Shown in pieces: positions 995 to 13,472 of a stretch of 13,769 nt of DNA. The stretch is from sequence record NC_028256.1, one strand, 5' to 3'. The notes under the pieces are model-generated. The model saw nothing but the letters and a program-made list of their open reading frames with translations. It did no database searches and was not told the origin of the DNA. The stretch's first letter is position 1; every line of letters begins with the position of its first letter. Position numbers and translations under genes: made by a program.

Positions 995-1261
995 TCACCC
1001 CGTTATTATTGCGCCTATCTTTTCCAGCACCTGCTCGCCCGCCTTGGTCAGGTAGTACTTGCCCTGCCCGTTCTTGTCGACAAGGTTCAGCGCGAGTAGC
1101 TTCTGCATGAGCCCGTGTGCGCTGCTGGGTGGTATGCCCAGCGAGTCGCTTATCTCCTTCAGGCTGGCCCCCTGGGGCTTCTCCCTCAAAAAACGCAGAG
1201 CCCTAAGCTCTCGGACGGAAAGCCTGTCCAGCCAGTTCACACTCGACACCTCACAGACCAA
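995..1261 (-). CDS. wHTH transcriptional regulator, MarR/ArsR/IclR-like (88 aa), candidate repressor
   Basis: Classic HTH (ASLKEISDSLGIPPSSAHGLMQKLLALNLV) plus wing YYLTKAG. TTG start at 1261 lies about 25 nt downstream of a TTAAATA box (1290-1284), which suggests a leaderless mRNA. Confidence 0.85.
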   Translation of the reverse strand: MVCEVSSVNWLDRLSVRELRALRFLREKPQGASLKEISDSLGIPPSSAHGLMQKLLALNLVDKNGQGKYYLTKAGEQVLEKIGAIITG

Positions 1262-1361
1262 TTCCTAATTTGGAATTTGGAAATATTTAAGTGTTTACCA
1301 TTTGGAATTCCAGTTTCCATTTTTAAACTTCCAGATTTGGAATTAAGAACGGGTTTCTACG
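1262..1361. promoter_or_regulatory. Divergent promoter region with repeated operator-like boxes
   Basis: AT-rich. TATA-like TTAAATA on minus (1290-1284) and TTTTAAA on plus (1321-1327). ATTTGGAA at 1268, 1275, 1300 and 1335. Boxes TTCCTAATTTGGAA (1262-1275) and TTCCAGATTTGGAA (1329-1342). Palindrome TGGAATTCCA (1303-1312). Confidence 0.8.
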
Positions 1362-2021
1362 GTGGCGCTCAGAAAACCCATAGTAAGCCCCACCACAGCA
1401 TCTATACTAATACTACTACTACAGAGGGCCCAAGCCTCAAGCGTCGAGCTGGCCGTCGAGCTGGGCGTCTACCCCAGCCAGGTCAACGCCTATCTGCATT
1501 ATTACAGGAAGCAGGGTATAGTCGAGAAGAGCGGCGATGTCTGGCGGCTCACAGAAGATGGTTTAAAATATGTGCAGGAGCGCTATGATTATTTAACTAA
1601 TGTGGCTTCGGCTTTCGGAATAAAAATTAATAAAGATGAATCAAGAAGAATAAATCTTTATTCCGAAATTAGAAAGGTCGCTGTTGAGTGGCTCAACGGC
1701 CACGAGGATTGCCTGTTTATCGTCGACTTCCTGGCTTTCCTATATTTCGAGAGGGGTAAGACGTACTTCGAGGCTGGACGGGGGCTGGCCGACAGCCTGG
1801 CAGAGGCCCTGGAAGAGTATAGTAGTGGTGGTTATGTCAGCCCCTTCCGCGTCCAGGAGTGTCTCGCAGAGCTGTCCCAGAGGGGCGTCGTCTACATCTG
1901 GCGGGGGCGGAAGGTCAGGCTGGCCAAGCAGCTTATAGAGGCCGCCCGAAGACAAGCTCCCGCAGCTCCCGCAGCCTCTCGACCACCTGGACGCCCTTAT
2001 CCGTCAGGCGGACGCATTTAA
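1362..2021 (+). CDS. Tandem winged-helix protein (219 aa), candidate replication initiator or regulator
   Basis: N-terminal wHTH (SSVELAVELGVYPSQVNAYLHYYRKQGIVEKSGDVWRLTEDG) and a second wHTH-like unit (PFRVQECLAELSQRGVVYIWRGRKVRL). GTG start downstream of TATA 1321-1327. Confidence 0.8.
   Translation: MALRKPIVSPTTASILILLLQRAQASSVELAVELGVYPSQVNAYLHYYRKQGIVEKSGDVWRLTEDGLKYVQERYDYLTNVASAFGIKINKDESRRINLYSEIRKVAVEWLNGHEDCLFIVDFLAFLYFERGKTYFEAGRGLADSLAEALEEYSSGGYVSPFRVQECLAELSQRGVVYIWRGRKVRLAKQLIEAARRQAPAAPAASRPPGRPYPSGGRI
1613..1668. repeat. Perfect 12-bp inverted repeat flanking an AT-rich 32-bp spacer
   Basis: TTTCGGAATAAA (1613-1624) and TTTATTCCGAAA (1657-1668). Spacer 1625-1656 has 6 G/C in 32 nt. 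Confidence 0.85.
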
Positions 2022-2217
2022 CCCTTACACCCTTCTCCTCGCTAAAACAAACCGTCTCCTCTATGAGCCCTAGCCTCTTAAGGTGCTCCACGTTCTGGTA
2101 GAACGAGCCCGACCCAGCGAAATCTATAATCTTATGCTGGGGGAGCTCCCTAGCGTTATACCTTATAAACGTTAATAGAAACTTCTCGACGCCGCCGCGC
2201 TTAAACAACAGCTCCAA
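1933..2217 (-). CDS. MarR-like wHTH protein (94 aa), reminiscent of SSV1/STIV F93-type regulators
   Basis: Recognition helix SFYQNVEHLKRLGLIEE, wing hairpin ending VRLTDKG. TATA-like TATAAG at 2260-2255 upstream on minus. Confidence 0.8.
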   Translation of the reverse strand: MELLFKRGGVEKFLLTFIRYNARELPQHKIIDFAGSGSFYQNVEHLKRLGLIEETVCFSEEKGVRVKCVRLTDKGVQVVERLRELRELVFGRPL

Positions 2218-2265
2218 GGCCTCTCTACCAAGGCTTAGTTTTGCCTGTGTAATTCTTATATGATA

Positions 2266-2281
2266 ATTCGGTATACCGAAT
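2266..2281. promoter_or_regulatory. Perfect 16-bp palindrome, putative operator
   Basis: ATTCGGTATACCGAAT is its own reverse complement. It lies next to the TATA-like box of the 94-aa wHTH gene in a divergent intergenic region. Confidence 0.7.
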
Positions 2282-2371
2282 CAAGAAGGGTTGGGATCCT
2301 TGGCTAGGGCTGGCCCAATAATAATTATTTCCTTAGGGGGGTTTGCATCACTAGTGGTGTTATTCTCAAGG

Positions 2372-2565: not shown

Positions 2566-2739
2566 TCACTTCCCGAATGTTGGCTCCTCGGCTAAGAGCT
2601 CTTCCAGCTCCGCCTCGTACAGTTCTATAGCCTCTAACGCCCTCTTACGGGCCTCTGGCCATCCCGCCAGCCTCATGTTCATCTCTCTCTTGAGCTTAAC
2701 CAAGAGCCGCAGGATGGCCTCACGCTCGCAGCCAGACAT
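2566..2739 (-). CDS. Small charged alpha-helical protein (57 aa)
   Basis: Manual translation MSGCEREAILRLLVKLKREMNMRLAGWPEARKRALEAIELYEAELEELLAEEPTFGK. ATG 2739 preceded by GGTGG..GGTG; GAG/AGG/CTG codon usage like the real genes. Not in the ORF track. Confidence 0.7.
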   Translation of the reverse strand: MSGCEREAILRLLVKLKREMNMRLAGWPEARKRALEAIELYEAELEELLAEEPTFGK

Positions 2740-3220: not shown

Positions 3221-5257
3221 CTAGGAGGGCTGGAGGGAGATGCTCTCGATCACGCCATAGGCTTTAACGAAGACTCCAGAGACCTGTAACAGCGAGGCGT
3301 CGGCCAGAGCCTTCAGACCTACCTCGACATAGTAGTCGCCAGCACCTAGCTGGAGGTTGTTCAGCTCGAAGGACAGGGTTTTCACCCCCTCCATACCAGG
3401 GGGTAGATCCTTCTCGATAGTTACTACAGTATCCTCTACATGCTTTATCAAGTTGCCGCTGGGATCGTAGAGCTTCACAACGGCTATCACGTAACCCGTG
3501 TTTCCATAGCTGTCAACACCGTAGTAGTACACCATCATCAGGATCCTGAGAGTGTAGCTGCCGCTGGCTGGTGCATTGAGCCTAACCTTGCTGTAGGCAT
3601 ATGCCCATGCATCCTCGTATATATCGCTAAAAGCAGCTACCCTCAGCAGCCAGCCGTCTCCCGAGACACCATAGTCTGCATAATAGCTTGTTAGACTGAG
3701 GAAGCCAGTGCTGTCTCCTCCAGTCTCGACAAGCTCCCCGCTCCAGAGCGCCTTCGGCTCCTGCAGAGGGTCTAGGGGAGACCTCCCGAGCCTCTGAGCC
3801 AGGTCCAGGTACAACTTGAGGGCCTGCACCGCCAGGATGGTGCTCTCGCTGTTCACTACGGCAAAGGGCCACTCGCTGGGCATGGGTCTCAATGCTTCTC
3901 CCACATCATAACCTAGAGTTGCCAGGACTCCAGTTACAGAGTCGAGGCCGCTTGTAAAAGTGTCCAGGATACCCCAGGCGCTAGGTTTTGAGACGAGGCT
4001 GCCTATATCATAGGCGGCGGGCCACCATCCCCTGAATAGGGCTAGCCTCACAGGGCCCCAGGGTGTGTCGTGCTCATAATCCCACTGTAGTCTGACAAGG
4101 ATGCCAGCCAGCCTATCGGCCATATAAAGTATGTCGTTGCCAGCCACCCACCTATCACCAGTCGTGTCATAGTACTTTACCAAGGCTGCCAGCAGAGTCG
4201 CATTGAGATATACTGGATAACCCTTGTAGCTCCAGCTAAGCCCGTAAACATTGGCCTTCTTGAGCCCGTACCCATCCCATCCGCCCTCTATAATTGCCTC
4301 TGCGATTAGCTGCTCCGCTTCGCTCTGAGCACTGGCGCCATACTTGTCAAGGAGATGCATAGCTCTAAGTAGCTTATGTAGGGGGAACTCCTTCCACCCA
4401 GAGATAGCCTCGTTGAAAAGGCCGAGGGAGTCGAGAATGTAGATCCTGCTCTTGTAAGGATAGTTAACCAAGTAGTCGCCCACCTGCCAGGGGTGCCCTT
4501 CATAGCCGTTCCAGGAGAGCCAGGTGCTGTACCTGTAGTCGAAGAAGCTGTCTGGATACGTTTTACTCCTGCCAAAGAGCGGCGCATACACGTCGTAGTT
4601 AAAGTCTACAACATTGTCCCAAAGCTCCTTCATCTTACGTGGATAGTAGCTGTAGCCCTCGTCCTCCAGCAGCCAAGCCGCTATTATGGTGCTGTGCCTG
4701 AGGACGTATCTCGCACTGTGGAACTTGTAGTCGTTCCCCTCATAGATTGTTTTGGTGGTGCTCCAGCCCTGTGTAACGCCGTAGTACCAGTACGATCCTC
4801 TGGTGCCTAGCGCTAGGTCGAACTGGTATTCAGATTCGTCGACGTATACTAGTAGCTCGTCAGTATTGTAATCAACGTTAGTGAGCGATGCATAAATCAC
4901 TATGTCATAGTCGCTGTCGCTGTCGACATTGAAGTAGTATCGCCACGCTACCATATTGTTTGTGACGCCAACCAGCTCCGTCTTGTAATATTTGTCGCCA
5001 GGATCTAGGAAGCTACCTGGAACATAGAGTTCGCCGTTGTACTTAACCATGATTGTCGGGCTGGGGTAATCTGGCATTACGTAGTAGGTGCTACCGTTAA
5101 CGTCTACGGGCCTGATGGCATCGAGAACTGCCTGGACACCCAGGTCTATCGCATTCTGCACGTCAGTCAGCGTCAGCCCGCTGGCCTTCACTGGTACAGC
5201 ATAGAGTATCGCCTGCGCTAACAGGAGAGCGACCAGAGCTAGAGACGCCACCCTCAA
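3221..5257 (-). CDS. Large secreted/virion protein (678 aa) with a probable (alpha/alpha)-barrel core and beta-rich domains; candidate receptor-binding or glycan-active protein
   Basis: N-terminal signal peptide (MRVASLALVALLLAQAILYAVPVKA), Tyr/Trp/Gly rich. Helical repeats such as NATLLAALVKYYDTTGD...ADRLAGILVRLQW and NSESTILAVQALKLYL resemble six-hairpin glycosidase/prenyltransferase-type barrels. TTTTAAA at 5276-5270 upstream. Confidence 0.85.
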   Translation of the reverse strand: MRVASLALVALLLAQAILYAVPVKASGLTLTDVQNAIDLGVQAVLDAIRPVDVNGSTYYVMPDYPSPTIMVKYNGELYVPGSFLDPGDKYYKTELVGVTNNMVAWRYYFNVDSDSDYDIVIYASLTNVDYNTDELLVYVDESEYQFDLALGTRGSYWYYGVTQGWSTTKTIYEGNDYKFHSARYVLRHSTIIAAWLLEDEGYSYYPRKMKELWDNVVDFNYDVYAPLFGRSKTYPDSFFDYRYSTWLSWNGYEGHPWQVGDYLVNYPYKSRIYILDSLGLFNEAISGWKEFPLHKLLRAMHLLDKYGASAQSEAEQLIAEAIIEGGWDGYGLKKANVYGLSWSYKGYPVYLNATLLAALVKYYDTTGDRWVAGNDILYMADRLAGILVRLQWDYEHDTPWGPVRLALFRGWWPAAYDIGSLVSKPSAWGILDTFTSGLDSVTGVLATLGYDVGEALRPMPSEWPFAVVNSESTILAVQALKLYLDLAQRLGRSPLDPLQEPKALWSGELVETGGDSTGFLSLTSYYADYGVSGDGWLLRVAAFSDIYEDAWAYAYSKVRLNAPASGSYTLRILMMVYYYGVDSYGNTGYVIAVVKLYDPSGNLIKHVEDTVVTIEKDLPPGMEGVKTLSFELNNLQLGAGDYYVEVGLKALADASLLQVSGVFVKAYGVIESISLQPS

Positions 5258-5347
5258 GGCGCATCGGTGTTTAAAATATCAAGGATAATGTCTAGTCTAT
5301 CACTAATTCATGGCCGCTCTAGGCTACTCTAAACAGCTTCCATCGCC

Positions 5348-6353
5348 TTAAATCCGTCTGGCCAGAGCTACAGCTCTCGCCAGGGCGATTGCAGCCGCCA
5401 GGGCCCCTCCAGCCGCTGCAGCCGCCTCGGGCAGACCCCAGTACTGACCCCTTGCCTTAGCCTCTGCAATGTACTGCTTGGTAGAGTTGTACAGGTAGTA
5501 AGGGTCCTTTATGGCTGGGTCGTTAGCTGGCTCTATGAAAGTGTTCTCATGGTACTCGTTCCAGCTAGTTATGGCTATCAATCTCACTCTGTCAAGGTTG
5601 CGGAGCACCCATTCCCACTGCCTCTCGTACCAGCCCTGGGATAGGTCGTAGTCTATAGAGAGGCCAGGGCTCCTGAAGTGGTCATCCCTATAACGTGGGG
5701 TGAGGACAACATAGCCGTCCCTCCTCACCCTCAGCTCCCCGCTCAACGCATTGTCGTAGTCTGGCCAGTAGTCCCAATCCTGGTAGCCTGCACTGTCAAT
5801 GTCATTACCTACTATCCTGATTGCGTAGCCAGGGAAGTCGGGCCTCGGGTCGTATGCCAAGCCTATAGGGTTGAACGCCAGCACCAGGGGCTTGCCGTCC
5901 AGCCTGAGATATGCTCCTGGGTAGCGGTCGATGAAATTTTGCTTTATATAAGCTAGGGTCTGCTCCCAGAACGCCCTGTCATACCTCGAGGGGTCGTTGC
6001 CGAGATAGGGCTCAACGAATATGGCGGCCTTGAGTCCGTAGAGCTGCGCCCTCCAGAACACCCTCCTAGCCGCCTCGTCCTCGAAGCCCCCTGGCCCCCA
6101 CCACGATATGAAGAGGCAGTCTATGCCAGCCTCCCGCATCCTCTGGAGCTGCCAGTCGATAACCCTAACGTCCCTGCTGTCGTAGAGGCCGATAACAGGC
6201 ACTGCAAGAACAGTGCTGTCCCAGTGCCTCCCATCACCGCTGTACCATGGGTAGAAGTAGACGCAGACTATAGGCTGGCTAGAGGAGTATACCGTGATGG
6301 GGGCTGTAGATAGTGCTAGCAGGAAAAAAGAGTAGTGCTGCTTCTCTTCTCAC
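5348..6353 (-). CDS. GH99/GH71-like glycoside hydrolase (endo-alpha-mannosidase family) with signal peptide and C-terminal membrane anchor; frameshifted at 6324-6329
   Basis: GH99-type motifs: VYFYPWY (in frame upstream of the track's 6202 start), GLYDSRD, AGIDCLFISWWG, FVEPY and ITSWNEYHENTFIEP (ExxE catalytic pair). The SD-led GTG at 6353 is in a different frame; removing one T from the T6 run yields a 334-aa protein starting MRREAALLFFLLALSTAPITVYS. Confidence 0.85.
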
Positions 6354-11228: not shown

Positions 11229-11972
11229 ATGGGGGGTACCCCCGCCCTAGAAGAGTCCAAGGTCAAGGGCAACCTAGCGAGGCTACTGTGGAAGGAGATG
11301 AAGGAGCAGGACAGTAGCAGCGTGGTAGTGGCATTCGGGAGGACGGGAGCGGGTAAGAGCCAGTACGCCATGAAGGTCTCACACCAGTTCTACGGGGATT
11401 GGAGGGAGGTGCTCAGGCGGCTCGTGTTCACTCCCTTCGACTTCCAGAGGGCCATAGAAGAGCTTGATGCCCGTGATGAATGGATACCTGTCTTGGTATG
11501 GGATGATGCGGGGCCCTGGCTGGAGCTTTTGAAGCGTAACAGCTGGCACCCCCTGGCTATCGGGGTTAGGGGGGCTTTCGAGACCGCCAGGGTCAGGGTG
11601 GGGGCTATACTCCTGACTATGACCACGGACAGGAGCCTCCCTAGGAGCATAGCATACGACGGGTACCTCTACAAGTTCAGGGCCAAGCTCGTCAAGTGGG
11701 GCAGCCAGGGGGACGGGAAGCCAAAGAGCGTGGCTAGGATCCAGGTGAGGAGGGAGCGGGAGAGCGAGTGGGGCAAGTTCTACTGGGAGGAGGCCTATAG
11801 GGACTGGGTAACCCTGAACGTGCCAGTCTACGGGGAGTACCTGGAGCTGAGGAAGAGGTTCCTCAGGCTCTACAACAAGCTGATAAGGGAGGCCCCCAGG
11901 CTGGGGCCCAGGCAGGCCCTAGAGTTCATAGCGCGGGAGTGGGAGAGGATGAGGAGTGGAGGCGAGGGCTAG
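11229..11972 (+). CDS. P-loop ATPase of the SSV1 B251 (DnaA-like) family (247 aa)
   Basis: Walker A VAFGRTGAGKS and Walker B VLVWDDAG. Size and location upstream of the integrase as in fuselloviruses. Confidence 0.85.
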   Translation: MGGTPALEESKVKGNLARLLWKEMKEQDSSSVVVAFGRTGAGKSQYAMKVSHQFYGDWREVLRRLVFTPFDFQRAIEELDARDEWIPVLVWDDAGPWLELLKRNSWHPLAIGVRGAFETARVRVGAILLTMTTDRSLPRSIAYDGYLYKFRAKLVKWGSQGDGKPKSVARIQVRRERESEWGKFYWEEAYRDWVTLNVPVYGEYLELRKRFLRLYNKLIREAPRLGPRQALEFIAREWERMRSGGEG

Positions 11973-12258
11973 GCTCGCCTGGCTGCTATGGCTGCTACTG
12001 CTGCAGGCCCTGGACGCTGCTACAACGGTTCTAGCCGTCAGGGCTGGGGCAGTCGAGCTTAACCCCCTGGTTAGGCTGTTGCTTGAGAGCCCTTGGGCGC
12101 TGCTTACTGCTAAGCTGCTAGCAGGGTGGGCTGTCTGGCTACTTGCTGGAGGCTCTAGGGCTGCTATGCTCCTAGTCTCGGCCCTCTACATTCAAGCGGT
12201 AGCAGCTAACACGCTCAGCCTGCTTAAATCATGGGTAGTTTTAAGCAGCATGTTTTAA
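11956..12258 (+). CDS. DUF5658-like small membrane protein (100 aa)
   Basis: Motif LDAATTVLAVRAGAVELNP fits the LD-x2-TT...G-x2-E-x-NP signature. Three hydrophobic helices; GTG after GAGGAG. Confidence 0.75.
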   Translation: MEARARLAWLLWLLLLQALDAATTVLAVRAGAVELNPLVRLLLESPWALLTAKLLAGWAVWLLAGGSRAAMLLVSALYIQAVAANTLSLLKSWVVLSSMF

Positions 12259-12272
12259 GCAAATGGAGATGC

Positions 12273-13472
12273 ATGTGGGGTGAACCCCTCTTGTATGGAG
12301 CTGGAGACTCGACTGTAACATTGGTGCCTAAACCCTTGTACGTGTACGTCCACACCGTCAAGAGCAAGGGCAGGATATACCAGTACCTCGTCGTAGAGGA
12401 GTACCTCGGCCAAGGCAGGCGTAGAACCATCCTCAGGATGCGCCTCGAAGAAGCCGTAAGGAAGCTGCTAAACAATGAAAAGAAGGACAGCGCCGAAACC
12501 GCAGGGTGGTGCGGGGGGTGGGATTTGAACCCACGCAGGCCTACGCCAACGGGTCTTAAGCCCGCCCCCTCTAAGCCATTCTCATCGATGGTAATTGAAA
12601 AGAGAGATTCGGGTGATGGAGAATCGGAGCCTAGTTTTAAGCAGGATGGAGGGTTGATTGTTTCTGAAACTCTGGCTTCCAGGTTTCTCGAGTGGCTGGA
12701 CCTGCCAGAGGACTCGAGGCAGCTGAGGGACTACAGGAACAACCTGAGGCTGCTTATAGGAAAGCCACTGGACTGTGCTACTCTCCATGAGTTCGCTAGC
12801 CAGAGCAAGAGGAAGTATGAGACCGCCTCGAGGCTGCTGAGCTTCGTGGCCAGCAAGAGGGGCTTGGGGCTTAGGCAGCTTGCAGCGGAGCTTAGGGAGT
12901 GCCTGGGCAAGAAGCCTAGGAGCGGCAGCGACACCTACGTGCCCCCAGACTCGAGTATCCTCGAGGCTGCTAGAAGGCTCGAGGGGACTAGAGTCTACCA
13001 CGTGTTCCTCCTGCTGGTGGGCTCGGGTGCCAGGCTCTCCACGGTACACTGGCTGCTGCGCCAGGGCCTCGACTCCTCGAGGCTAGTCTGCCTTGAGGAT
13101 AGGGGGTTCTGCAGGTACCACGTCGACTACGTTAAGGGCGAGAAGCTCCAGTGGGCCCTCTACAGTCCTAGGGAGTTCTGGGAGAGAGTACTCGAGGAGC
13201 CCAGGCTAACCCTGTCCTACAACAGGGTCCAGGAGCAGATAGCGGGGGCTGGCGTCAAAGCCAAGCACATTCGAAACTGGGTCTACAACAAGATGCTATC
13301 CCTAGGGATGCCCGAGGGCGTAGTCGAATTCATAGTAGGCCATAAGGCGTCGAGCATTGGAAGAAGACACTACATGAACATGATAGTCCAGGCTGACATG
13401 TGGTACACAACATACTTGCCCGTAATCCCGAAAAGCCTTAAACTAAGCTGCACCACATGCTATGAGGGTTAA
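12273..13472 (+). CDS. int: SSV1-type tyrosine integrase, partitioned by attP on integration
   Basis: Catalytic residues R (SGARL), K (VKGEK), HxR (KHIRN), H (IVGH), Y (RRHYMN). SSV-like N-terminal KGRIYQYLVVE segment; tRNA-derived attP read in frame. Start uncertain (ATG 12273, TTG 12321 or GTG 12324; the track uses 12231). Confidence 0.95.
   Translation: MWGEPLLYGAGDSTVTLVPKPLYVYVHTVKSKGRIYQYLVVEEYLGQGRRRTILRMRLEEAVRKLLNNEKKDSAETAGWCGGWDLNPRRPTPTGLKPAPSKPFSSMVIEKRDSGDGESEPSFKQDGGLIVSETLASRFLEWLDLPEDSRQLRDYRNNLRLLIGKPLDCATLHEFASQSKRKYETASRLLSFVASKRGLGLRQLAAELRECLGKKPRSGSDTYVPPDSSILEAARRLEGTRVYHVFLLLVGSGARLSTVHWLLRQGLDSSRLVCLEDRGFCRYHVDYVKGEKLQWALYSPREFWERVLEEPRLTLSYNRVQEQIAGAGVKAKHIRNWVYNKMLSLGMPEGVVEFIVGHKASSIGRRHYMNMIVQADMWYTTYLPVIPKSLKLSCTTCYEG
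12507..12570 (-). other. attP: 3' portion of tRNA-Leu(UAA) including anticodon arm, variable arm, T arm, acceptor 3' strand and CCA (not a complete tRNA)
   Basis: Minus strand reads AGGGG GCGGG CTTAAGA CCCGT TGGCGTAGGCCTGC GTGGG TTCAAAT CCCAC CCCCCGC A CCA. Anticodon TAA at 12558-12556; 5' acceptor strand and most of the D arm are absent. Confidence 0.93.

Follow-up and report, generated by a model that had tools for sequence, protein, structure and literature searches.

Where does a virus that encodes no DNA polymerase begin to copy its genome? APOV1 (NC_028256.1) is an archaeal virus and a provirus in A. pernix K1. Its genome (GC 0.555) encodes an SSV-type integrase and a DnaA-like ATPase (ORF19) and is without a DNA polymerase. 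Guttavirus genomes are likely copied by the host replisome (ICTV profile). An initial annotation of the window, the whole stretch of 13,769 nucleotides (nt) that was analysed, had proposed that an AT-rich island inside open reading frame 5 (ORF5), a gene for a tandem winged helix-turn-helix (wHTH) protein, is a replication origin lying within its own initiator gene. We found that ORF5 is homologous to the archaeal replication initiator WhiP, that the island is conserved at synonymous sites, and that it is bracketed by two inverted repeats (IR(+) and IR(-), the latter degenerate) of the kind described for WhiP-type origins. Initiation within ORF5 is, in our view, fairly probable.

The coordinates of all features are listed in Table 1. 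The two sequences TTTCGGAATAAA and TTTATTCCGAAA in the island are exact reverse complements and enclose a 32-nt spacer (1625-1656) in which 26 of 32 nucleotides (81%) are A or T. The coordinates and the composition given for this repeat by the initial annotation were borne out, and its arms proved longer than the 12 nt reported, reaching 19 nt at 89% complementarity (1613-1631 and 1650-1668) in a repeat search. It is the only exact inverted repeat of the genome with arms of at least 10 nt and a spacer of at most 60 nt. Arms of 12 nt are expected 0.06 times per Markov-1 genome, and have a P of 0.0017 in a 121-nt stretch of local composition. The same region carries direct repeats with a period of 10 nt. 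Since this period is out of codon phase, the repetition is one of DNA sequence and not one of peptide sequence.

The island is also the weakest duplex of the genome. GC content is 0.28 over the 100 nt from 1562 and 0.20, the genome minimum, over the 60 nt from 1619. By nearest-neighbour calculation, the least stable 50-bp duplex begins at 1621, with -53.0 kcal/mol against a mean of -72.6 kcal/mol (sd 4.5), which is more than 4 sd below the genome mean. GC at third codon positions (GC3) is 0-12% at the island and 70-100% through most of the remaining ORF5, in agreement with the switch to A/T-ending codons that had been noticed before. The island encodes residues 85-103 of ORF5, which in the AlphaFold model form a low-confidence break and the start of a connecting helix. 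The predicted local distance difference test score (pLDDT) of this model drops below 50 in the break that separates the winged-helix halves (residues 86-91), and the earlier placement of the island in the linker between the wHTH domains was correct. No overlapping ORF of at least 50 amino acids (aa) in the other frames crosses 1600-1670. A frameshift site at the A AAA AAT run of APOV1 was ruled out, because the run is not kept in relatives.

Nine close relatives of ORF5 (47-63% identity) were obtained from metagenomes and metagenome-assembled genomes (MAGs); a scan of genomes for relatives gave one MAG only. When metagenomes were scanned with the island pattern, 120 loci were returned, and relatives are encoded in only two of them (L048 and L120). 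The other loci were rejected as chance AT-rich matches. Every close relative carries near-identical island DNA, GGA ATA AAG ATG AAT AAA GAT GAA TCA ATA CTT TAT TCC AAA. The GC content of their contigs spans 0.42-0.63, and in all of them GC dips at the same place, with a GC3 of 0-14%. In a codon comparison with eight relatives, a shared amino acid was encoded by the same codon in 241 of 256 cases (94%) at the island and in 1686 of 3251 (52%) in the rest of the gene, and the island is the window of ORF5 with the highest synonymous codon identity. The codon pairs are not phylogenetically independent, so the Fisher p of 2.5e-47 is to be read as descriptive. Together with the out-of-phase period-10 array, this difference confirms the DNA-level constraint suspected from codon usage: the constraint on the island acts at the nucleotide level and is conserved in relatives.

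The structure of the island is conserved as well. The period-10 units are present in 10 relatives. Of the ten close relatives, nine retain the arms GGAATAAAG / CTTTATTCC of the inverted repeat around a spacer of 21 nt; APOV1 has one unit more. The exception is L012, which has three direct copies of the unit and no inverted copy, the right arm being absent. Distant relatives carry an array at the same linker position: L134 has six units of 10 nt there, L136 has four CATACTAAAG, L138 has units of the GAATACAAAAG type, and a paralogue on contig L005 has an AT tract with four 21-nt repeats. Further distant relatives show the linker array as short peptide repeats.

The test of synonymous conservation gave two further peaks in ORF5, at 1405-1422 and 1816-1832. 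The first, IR(+), contains the only exact TACTACTACTAC of the APOV1 genome. In the nine close relatives scanned, the gene contains an exact copy after 40-49 nt, and in L012 the copy is at +94; the Leu codons that it forms are fixed as CTA/TTA. The second, IR(-), is a complementary run whose codons are fixed as AGT/GGT in all relatives. Its counterpart is within one mismatch of TACTACTACTAC in L134, L136, L138 and the L005 paralogue. In APOV1 the two repeats are ~410 nt apart. Between them lies the AT-rich island, with the exact copy at 1411-1422 on one side and the inverted, degenerate one at 1816-1832 on the other. From lineage to lineage the two arms change in concert as Watson-Crick pairs, with 21 of 22 positions paired in L138, 20 of 23 in the L005 paralogue and 28 of 34 in L136; the arm sequence is TATATCTACTACTTCTACTACT in L138 and TACTATTACTACTAATACTACGC in the L005 paralogue. 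The arms also persist outside LLLL/SSGSS codons. For example, the left arm of L138 lies upstream of the start codon.

The protein was assigned to its family by profile comparison. In a search of 1.84 billion proteins, the profile of the ORF5 group matched protein P0044 with an E of 1.3e-5. P0044 is in one 90% cluster with HIP57060.1, which NCBI names 'replication initiator protein WhiP [Ignisphaera aggregans]'. A search from a protein of the HIP57060.1 cluster returned 35 relatives, one more of which is named WhiP. Alignment of the ORF5 group with 20 of these 35 WhiP proteins by hhalign gave a probability of 98.9% and an E of 1.1e-17 over 178 columns covering both domains. A virus-borne relative (P0021), encoded on a filamentous-virus-like contig (capsid Sulf_coat_C, Hjc), matches a named WhiP in BLASTP with an E of 4e-20. 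The ORF5 protein is ~27% identical to cellular WhiP, and its AlphaFold 2 model (mean pLDDT 82.7) has the order H-H-H-E-E at residues 10-63 and again at 118-187, joined by helices. Judged by sequence, ORF5 is a viral member of the WhiP family and a full-length homologue over both domains. Maximum-likelihood analysis placed the cellular WhiPs in one clade with 100/100 support and the APOV1 group in a separate clade. The cellular clade sits amid lineages from viral, proviral or short metagenomic contigs; because the tree is midpoint-rooted, the direction of capture that it suggests is uncertain.

General libraries gave a less specific result. Pfam (E of at most 0.1), NCBIfam, PHROGs, a sequence search of PDB (best 60 of 130 chains) and Foldseek (50 best PDB and 50 best BFVD matches) returned only generic winged-helix matches of the MarR/ArsR/TrmB/Sso10a type, and no Rep, Cdc6, Cdt1 or phage O family was among them. 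Even a protein that NCBI calls WhiP received no WhiP-named match from NCBIfam release 20. The kinship with Rep proteins of iteron plasmids, to which the initial annotation had pointed, was not supported: searches by family and by fold detected nothing of the Rep, Cdc6 or phage O kind, and the family is WhiP, which is Cdt1-related. WhiP has itself been called reminiscent of plasmid Rep proteins by Samson et al. (PMC3607249). The literature searched contained nothing that links APOV1 ORF5 to WhiP or names an APOV1 origin; the original description of APOV1 lay outside its coverage.

Table 1. Features of the ORF5 region and of other APOV1 genes discussed in the text.
Feature	Coordinates	Strand	Description
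ORF4	995-1240	-	IclR/MarR-type wHTH protein; Pfam HTH_IclR E 1.7e-10; first gene of the ORF4-ORF7 cassette
ORF4/ORF5 divergent promoter region	1260-1349		dense GGAAT / TTCC-N6-GGAA dyads around two TATA-like boxes
ORF5	1362-2021	+	219 aa; annotated 'hypothetical protein'; WhiP-family tandem winged-helix protein, candidate replication initiator
IR(+)	1405-1422	+	(TAC)n triplet run; exact TACTACTACTAC at 1411-1422; encodes Leu-rich helix 1
AT-rich island	1562-1680		proposed unwinding and initiator-binding core of the origin; lowest GC and least stable duplex of the genome
Inverted repeat, left arm	1613-1631	+	exact part 1613-1624 = TTTCGGAATAAA
Period-10 direct repeats	1618-1654	+	consensus GAATAAAGAT, 3.7 copies (Tandem Repeats Finder; repeat search)
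Inverted repeat, right arm	1650-1668	+	exact part 1657-1668 = TTTATTCCGAAA; inverted copy of the repeat unit
IR(-)	1816-1832	+	(TAG)n-type run AGTATAGTAGTGGTGGT, complementary to IR(+); encodes YSSGG (repeat search)
ORF6	1933-2217	-	small wHTH protein; convergent with ORF5, overlaps the ORF5 3' end
Operator	2262-2289		palindrome ATTCGGTATACCGAAT (2266-2281, perfect, 16 bp) followed by CGAATCAAGAAGG; built from the island repeat unit
ORF7	2566-2739	-	57 aa, predicted helical
ORF19	11229-11972	+	DnaA-like P-loop ATPase; RefSeq annotation and ICTV profile

The significance of these elements comes from what is known of WhiP. The third of the Sulfolobus origins, oriC3, relies on WhiP instead of Orc1/Cdc6, and its firing genetically requires WhiP in S. 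islandicus (PMC3607249). The maximum of WhiP in chromatin immunoprecipitation sequencing lies inside the Sulfolobus whiP ORF, and conserved AT-rich repeats in this ORF are footprinted by WhiP, which binds with nanomolar affinity (PMC3607249). The WhiP-type origin has been described as IR(+)/ucm/IR(-), with 5'-TACTACTACTAC-3' as the inverted repeat and 5'-TTATACAAAC-3' as the ucm (bioRxiv 10.64898/2026.08.15.744077). The ucm is a short A-rich motif, ATTATACAAAC, found in the unwinding region of every Sulfolobales and A. pernix origin and needed for firing; it is bound by the ucm-binding protein UBP, which contacts MCM (PMC12141716).

Two cellular whiP loci were compared with these descriptions. 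At the first (L140, on a 406-kb contig), IR(+) GTACTACTAACTTCTACTTCTAC, an exact ucm TTATACAAAC and IR(-) GAGTAGTAATTGTAGTAG follow one another within ~150 bp just downstream of whiP and match the published pattern. The second, a Desulfurococcales whiP locus (L139), has a similar arrangement that is more degenerate. In APOV1, IR(+), the island and IR(-) are all inside the ORF5 coding sequence, and in L136 the inverted repeats are at the gene edges. A ucm within one mismatch was found in no related gene. The island units share the pattern ATA...AAA with the ucm, and those of L138 share ATACAAA. Because of the missing ucm and the intragenic position, we regard the APOV1 locus as a variant and not as a canonical WhiP-type oriC. 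A search of the genome for ORB-like Orc1/Cdc6 sites at up to three mismatches, with a Sulfolobales ORB as query and not that of A. pernix, gave none, and no orc1/cdc6 gene is annotated in APOV1. The sequence GTTTGCAT (reverse complement ATGCAAAC), which agrees with the ucm at 8 of 10 positions, occurs in the intergenic DNA upstream of ORF6 at 2341-2350, and again between the inverted repeats downstream of the Desulfurococcales whiP (L139, 6826-6835). Chance may account for this sequence, as ~5 matches at two mismatches are expected per genome, or it may be a form of the ucm particular to a lineage.

Outside ORF5, the island unit recurs in an operator upstream of ORF6, between a TATA-like box TTCTTATATGATAA and a rightward ORF (2291-2467). 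This 58-aa ORF is unannotated and begins with TTG; in relatives a rightward gene is called at this place. At the operator position relatives carry TCTTTATTCGG-N4-12-CCGAATAAAGA, and in these relatives exact copies of the 9-mer GAATAAAGA are confined to island and operator in up to 20 kb of sequence. The same protein probably regulates transcription through the APOV1 operator too, as the shared unit suggests. The WhiP homology and the TAC-triplet signature reduce the plain reading of the island as an auxiliary operator to a rival, which is weighed below.

The WhiP homology, the bracketing TACTACTACTAC-type repeats and the Sulfolobus precedent thus support the idea of an origin within a tandem-wHTH initiator gene. 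We infer, with fair but limited confidence, that initiation occurs at 1405-1832, in a WhiP-type replicator contained in its own initiator gene. This replicator would have IR(+) in the codons of helix 1, the island in those of the inter-domain linker and IR(-) in those of the second domain. By a loose estimate, it is very likely that the ORF5 protein binds the island. After excision, it would bind the phased GAATAAAGAT units, of which three to four would lie on one face of the helix together with one inverted copy, and it would probably bind the TAC-triplet repeats as well. The 50-bp island would then melt, and the host MCM helicase and replisome would be recruited, possibly with the aid of the ORF19 ATPase or of the host ucm-binding protein. 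ORF5 protein at the palindromic operator would probably couple replication control to the transcription of ORF6 and the rightward genes. The initial annotation was right that no polymerase is encoded. ORF5 is not alone as a candidate replication protein, because the DnaA-like ORF19 is also encoded; a role of ORF19 as an accessory replication factor is possible.

Several observations weigh against initiation within ORF5. In Sulfolobus, oriC3 initiation maps to the intergenic region downstream of whiP and not to the intragenic repeats (PMC3607249), so the island could be the equivalent of the intragenic repeats only. The distance from IR to IR is ~410 bp in APOV1 and ~125 bp in L140. Read on the minus strand, the APOV1 IR(-) has three mismatches to TACTACTACTAC, all of them transitions, and it would fail the Ori-Finder-Arch rule of at most one mismatch. 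The ucm TTATACAAAC was not found between 1422 and 1816, even at two mismatches, and by hand alignment the island units match it at 5-6 of 10 positions in APOV1 and at 7 of 10 in L138. One 15-kb relative (L005) holds two WhiP-like genes of this sort. The island unit also serves as a promoter operator and ORF5 is part of a cassette of three small wHTH proteins, so that a role in control is possible. GC skew was tried as an origin marker and rejected: it follows gene orientation and hence gives no origin signal.

If the role is one of control, the island would be an intragenic array that binds the WhiP-like protein, either for autoregulation by roadblock or by looping to the operator, or for titration or handcuffing, and replication would start elsewhere, for example at 2218-2565 or 1260-1349. 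We consider this unlikely. Three observations speak for it. The palindromic GAATAAAGA operator stands between the TATA box and the rightward gene in all close relatives and the sequence is otherwise found only in the island; the intragenic WhiP-bound repeats of Sulfolobus are distinct from the initiation zone downstream of whiP (PMC3607249); and 2222-2290 and 1260-1349 are the next lowest-GC stretches. However, the TAC-triplet inverted repeats bracket the island and not these other regions. The region 2218-2565 is without a TAC-triplet run, and its sole ucm-like match has two mismatches, which is within chance. In distant relatives, moreover, the operator is missing and both the island and the inverted repeats are retained. 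Another rival reading holds that ORF4-ORF7 are a transcriptional (lysogeny-control) cassette only, in which ORF5 is a non-initiating regulator derived from WhiP, the island and the triplet runs are its operators, and an unrelated origin goes with ORF19 as in fuselloviruses. The two other small wHTH genes that flank ORF5 with dyad-rich promoters would suit it, as would the matches in Pfam, NCBIfam, PDB and Foldseek, which are to MarR/ArsR/TrmB-type regulators only, and the annotation of ORF19 as a DnaA-like initiator. It is nevertheless quite improbable, given that ORF5 is homologous over its full length to a genetically proven initiator, that the cis elements are those of a WhiP origin, and that what relatives have in common is the cassette and neither ORF19 nor the integrase. 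For the related fuselloviruses, neither an origin nor a function of the DnaA-like protein has been demonstrated (PMC6080066).

Constraint on the RNA or on translation would be another reason for the conserved codons. It could take the form of a hairpin in the mRNA, of a long-range helix (5'-3') formed by the two triplet runs, or of a translational pause at slow codons of the linker. The hairpin does fold at 37 C (z = -3.5). At 90 C, an A. pernix culture temperature, it is predicted to be unfolded (0 kcal/mol). Its arms show no compensatory changes among relatives, L012 is without the right arm, and Rfam gave no significant match (E 0.1; 26 bits against a threshold of 58 bits). For these reasons the reading by RNA or translation is disfavoured, and we give it very little credence. 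As for the long-range helix, most of the sense-strand mismatches between the triplet arms of 1405-1422 and 1816-1832 and of 12 related genes would be compatible with G.U pairs (24, and 7 are A.C), which would fit pairing at the level of RNA or single strands, in counts that are not phylogenetically independent. The long-range duplex has only -5 kcal/mol in APOV1, however, and in the APOV1 group cross-lineage duplex energies fail to separate own from foreign partners. The left arm of L138 also appears to lie upstream of the likely transcription start. Selection on codon speed, finally, does not predict exact nucleotide identity with 10-nt phasing.

The synteny of the ORF4-ORF7 cassette is common to the relatives. 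The sharing does not extend to ORF19, the integrase or the structural genes, and no ORF19 homologue was found in the related loci. ORF7 is the best-conserved protein of the cassette, with 63-76% identity to relatives. The divergent promoter region between ORF4 and ORF5 has the second-lowest GC in the genome. Its dyads are of a type that varies by lineage, being GGTTAAATTTAACC in L134 and TTCCCAGCTGGGAA in L138, and the intragenic elements stay similar across these lineages. The C-terminal tail of APOV1 ORF5 (within 1933-2021) is Pro/Ala-rich, ~20 aa long and missing in relatives. The tail region holds a 9-nt tandem repeat, AGCTCCCGC in 2.3 copies at 1955-1975, and lies over ORF6; the convergent overlap of ORF5 and ORF6 is kept in relatives. 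The RefSeq note 'orf5-119', against 219 residues encoded, is probably a typing slip in the record.

Two of the distant relatives show further variation. The contig that carries the WhiP-like gene of L136 (10001-10920) is 40 kb long and also encodes a capsid domain of the rudi/lipothrixvirus type (Sulf_coat_C), glycosyltransferases and an Hjc resolvase; the gene sits at the switch from leftward to rightward genes. In this gene, IR(+) is read as poly-threonine in an extension of the N terminus, and IR(-) is past the stop codon. On the 15-kb contig L005, the gene at 4791-5441 (minus strand) is a second, distant WhiP-like paralogue, which makes two modules on one element. TAC-triplet inverted repeats of its own accompany this gene, and its linker region holds a 33-bp AT tract together with four 21-nt direct repeats, GCAACACTTATKSRCAGTAAT, that are in frame.

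Elsewhere in the window, the integrase frame (12231-13472), when read from the ATG at 12231, includes WCGGWDLNPRRPTPTGLKP; the RefSeq start is 12273. WCGGWDLNPRRPTPTGLKP resembles a translated 3' half of a tRNA, as is expected of an SSV-type integrase with attP inside the gene, and ARAGORN found no complete tRNA in the window. A scan for sigma-70 promoters and intrinsic terminators gave nothing above shuffled sequences and was set aside as not applicable, since APOV1 is an archaeal virus.

The relatives suggest a wider proposal, which we put forward tentatively and with slightly more doubt than belief. Compact WhiP replicons with the entire origin in the initiator frame may be carried by APOV1 and by a broad range of crenarchaeal viruses and integrated elements, most of them known from metagenomes and one of them a filamentous-virus-like contig, and the cellular oriC3/whiP may be one captured branch of them. 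If this is true, these mobile elements would be the long-postulated extrachromosomal source of a chromosomal replication origin. The proposed capture of Sulfolobus oriC3/whiP and A. pernix oriC2 from extrachromosomal elements gains candidate mobile relatives. APOV1 itself gains a concrete candidate initiator and a 450-bp candidate origin. Three candidate cis-acting DNA elements are held in one reading frame and kept at synonymous sites across genomes of 42-63% GC, and in being kept they shape the ORF5 sequence itself, in its Leu run, its linker and its Ser/Gly run. To our knowledge, Desulfurococcales are without genetic tools, and so compact a replicon could seed shuttle vectors for them.

How does this locus compare with known replication systems? 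The Orc1/Cdc6-ORB origin differs, there being no ORB match and no annotated orc1/cdc6 gene in APOV1. The ucm/UBP element is similar in that an A-rich motif lies in the unwinding region and the island units follow the ATA...AAA pattern; it differs in that the island has no match within two mismatches and that the APOV1 motif is iterated in helical phase.

The iteron Rep proteins (RepE, RepA, pi) share with APOV1 a tandem winged-helix protein and direct repeats combined with an operator at a promoter that is an inverted repeat of the same unit. In contrast to these systems, no Rep_3/RepA match was obtained (Pfam, PDB sequence search and Foldseek, among the matches listed), and the APOV1 operator is not at the promoter of its own gene. 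The APOV1 units are 10 bp long against 17-22 bp, with the exception of the L005 paralogue and its four 21-nt repeats beside an AT tract.

In lambda, the origin consists of repeated initiator sites and an AT-rich tract inside gene O, where the gene encodes the linker that joins the DNA-binding domain to the remaining protein, and O recruits the host helicase. The comparison with gene O made by the initial annotation stands as a likeness of architecture, since in APOV1 too the putative origin would be inside the initiator gene at the linker-coding part. As a homology it does not stand: there is no Pfam or PHROG match, and no relation of sequence or fold was found. The units are 10 bp against the 18-19 bp iterons of lambda, and the APOV1 host is archaeal and uses MCM.

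The closest system is WhiP/oriC3 of Sulfolobales, with its counterpart oriC2 of A. pernix. The APOV1 version differs in several respects. Its IR/AT-rich/IR unit is wholly intragenic, and the cellular origin occupies intergenic DNA downstream of the gene; ~410 bp separate the inverted repeats instead of ~125 bp; the core is a period-10 GAATAAAGAT array in place of a single ucm TTATACAAAC; and the whole is carried by a virus/provirus and related mobile elements, with a protein that is only ~27% identical. Common to both are the independence from ORB/Orc1 sites, the AT-rich repeats inside the initiator ORF, which are protein-bound in Sulfolobus, the TACTACTACTAC-type inverted repeats on both sides of an AT-rich core (with a degenerate IR(-) in APOV1), and a homologous tandem winged-helix initiator.

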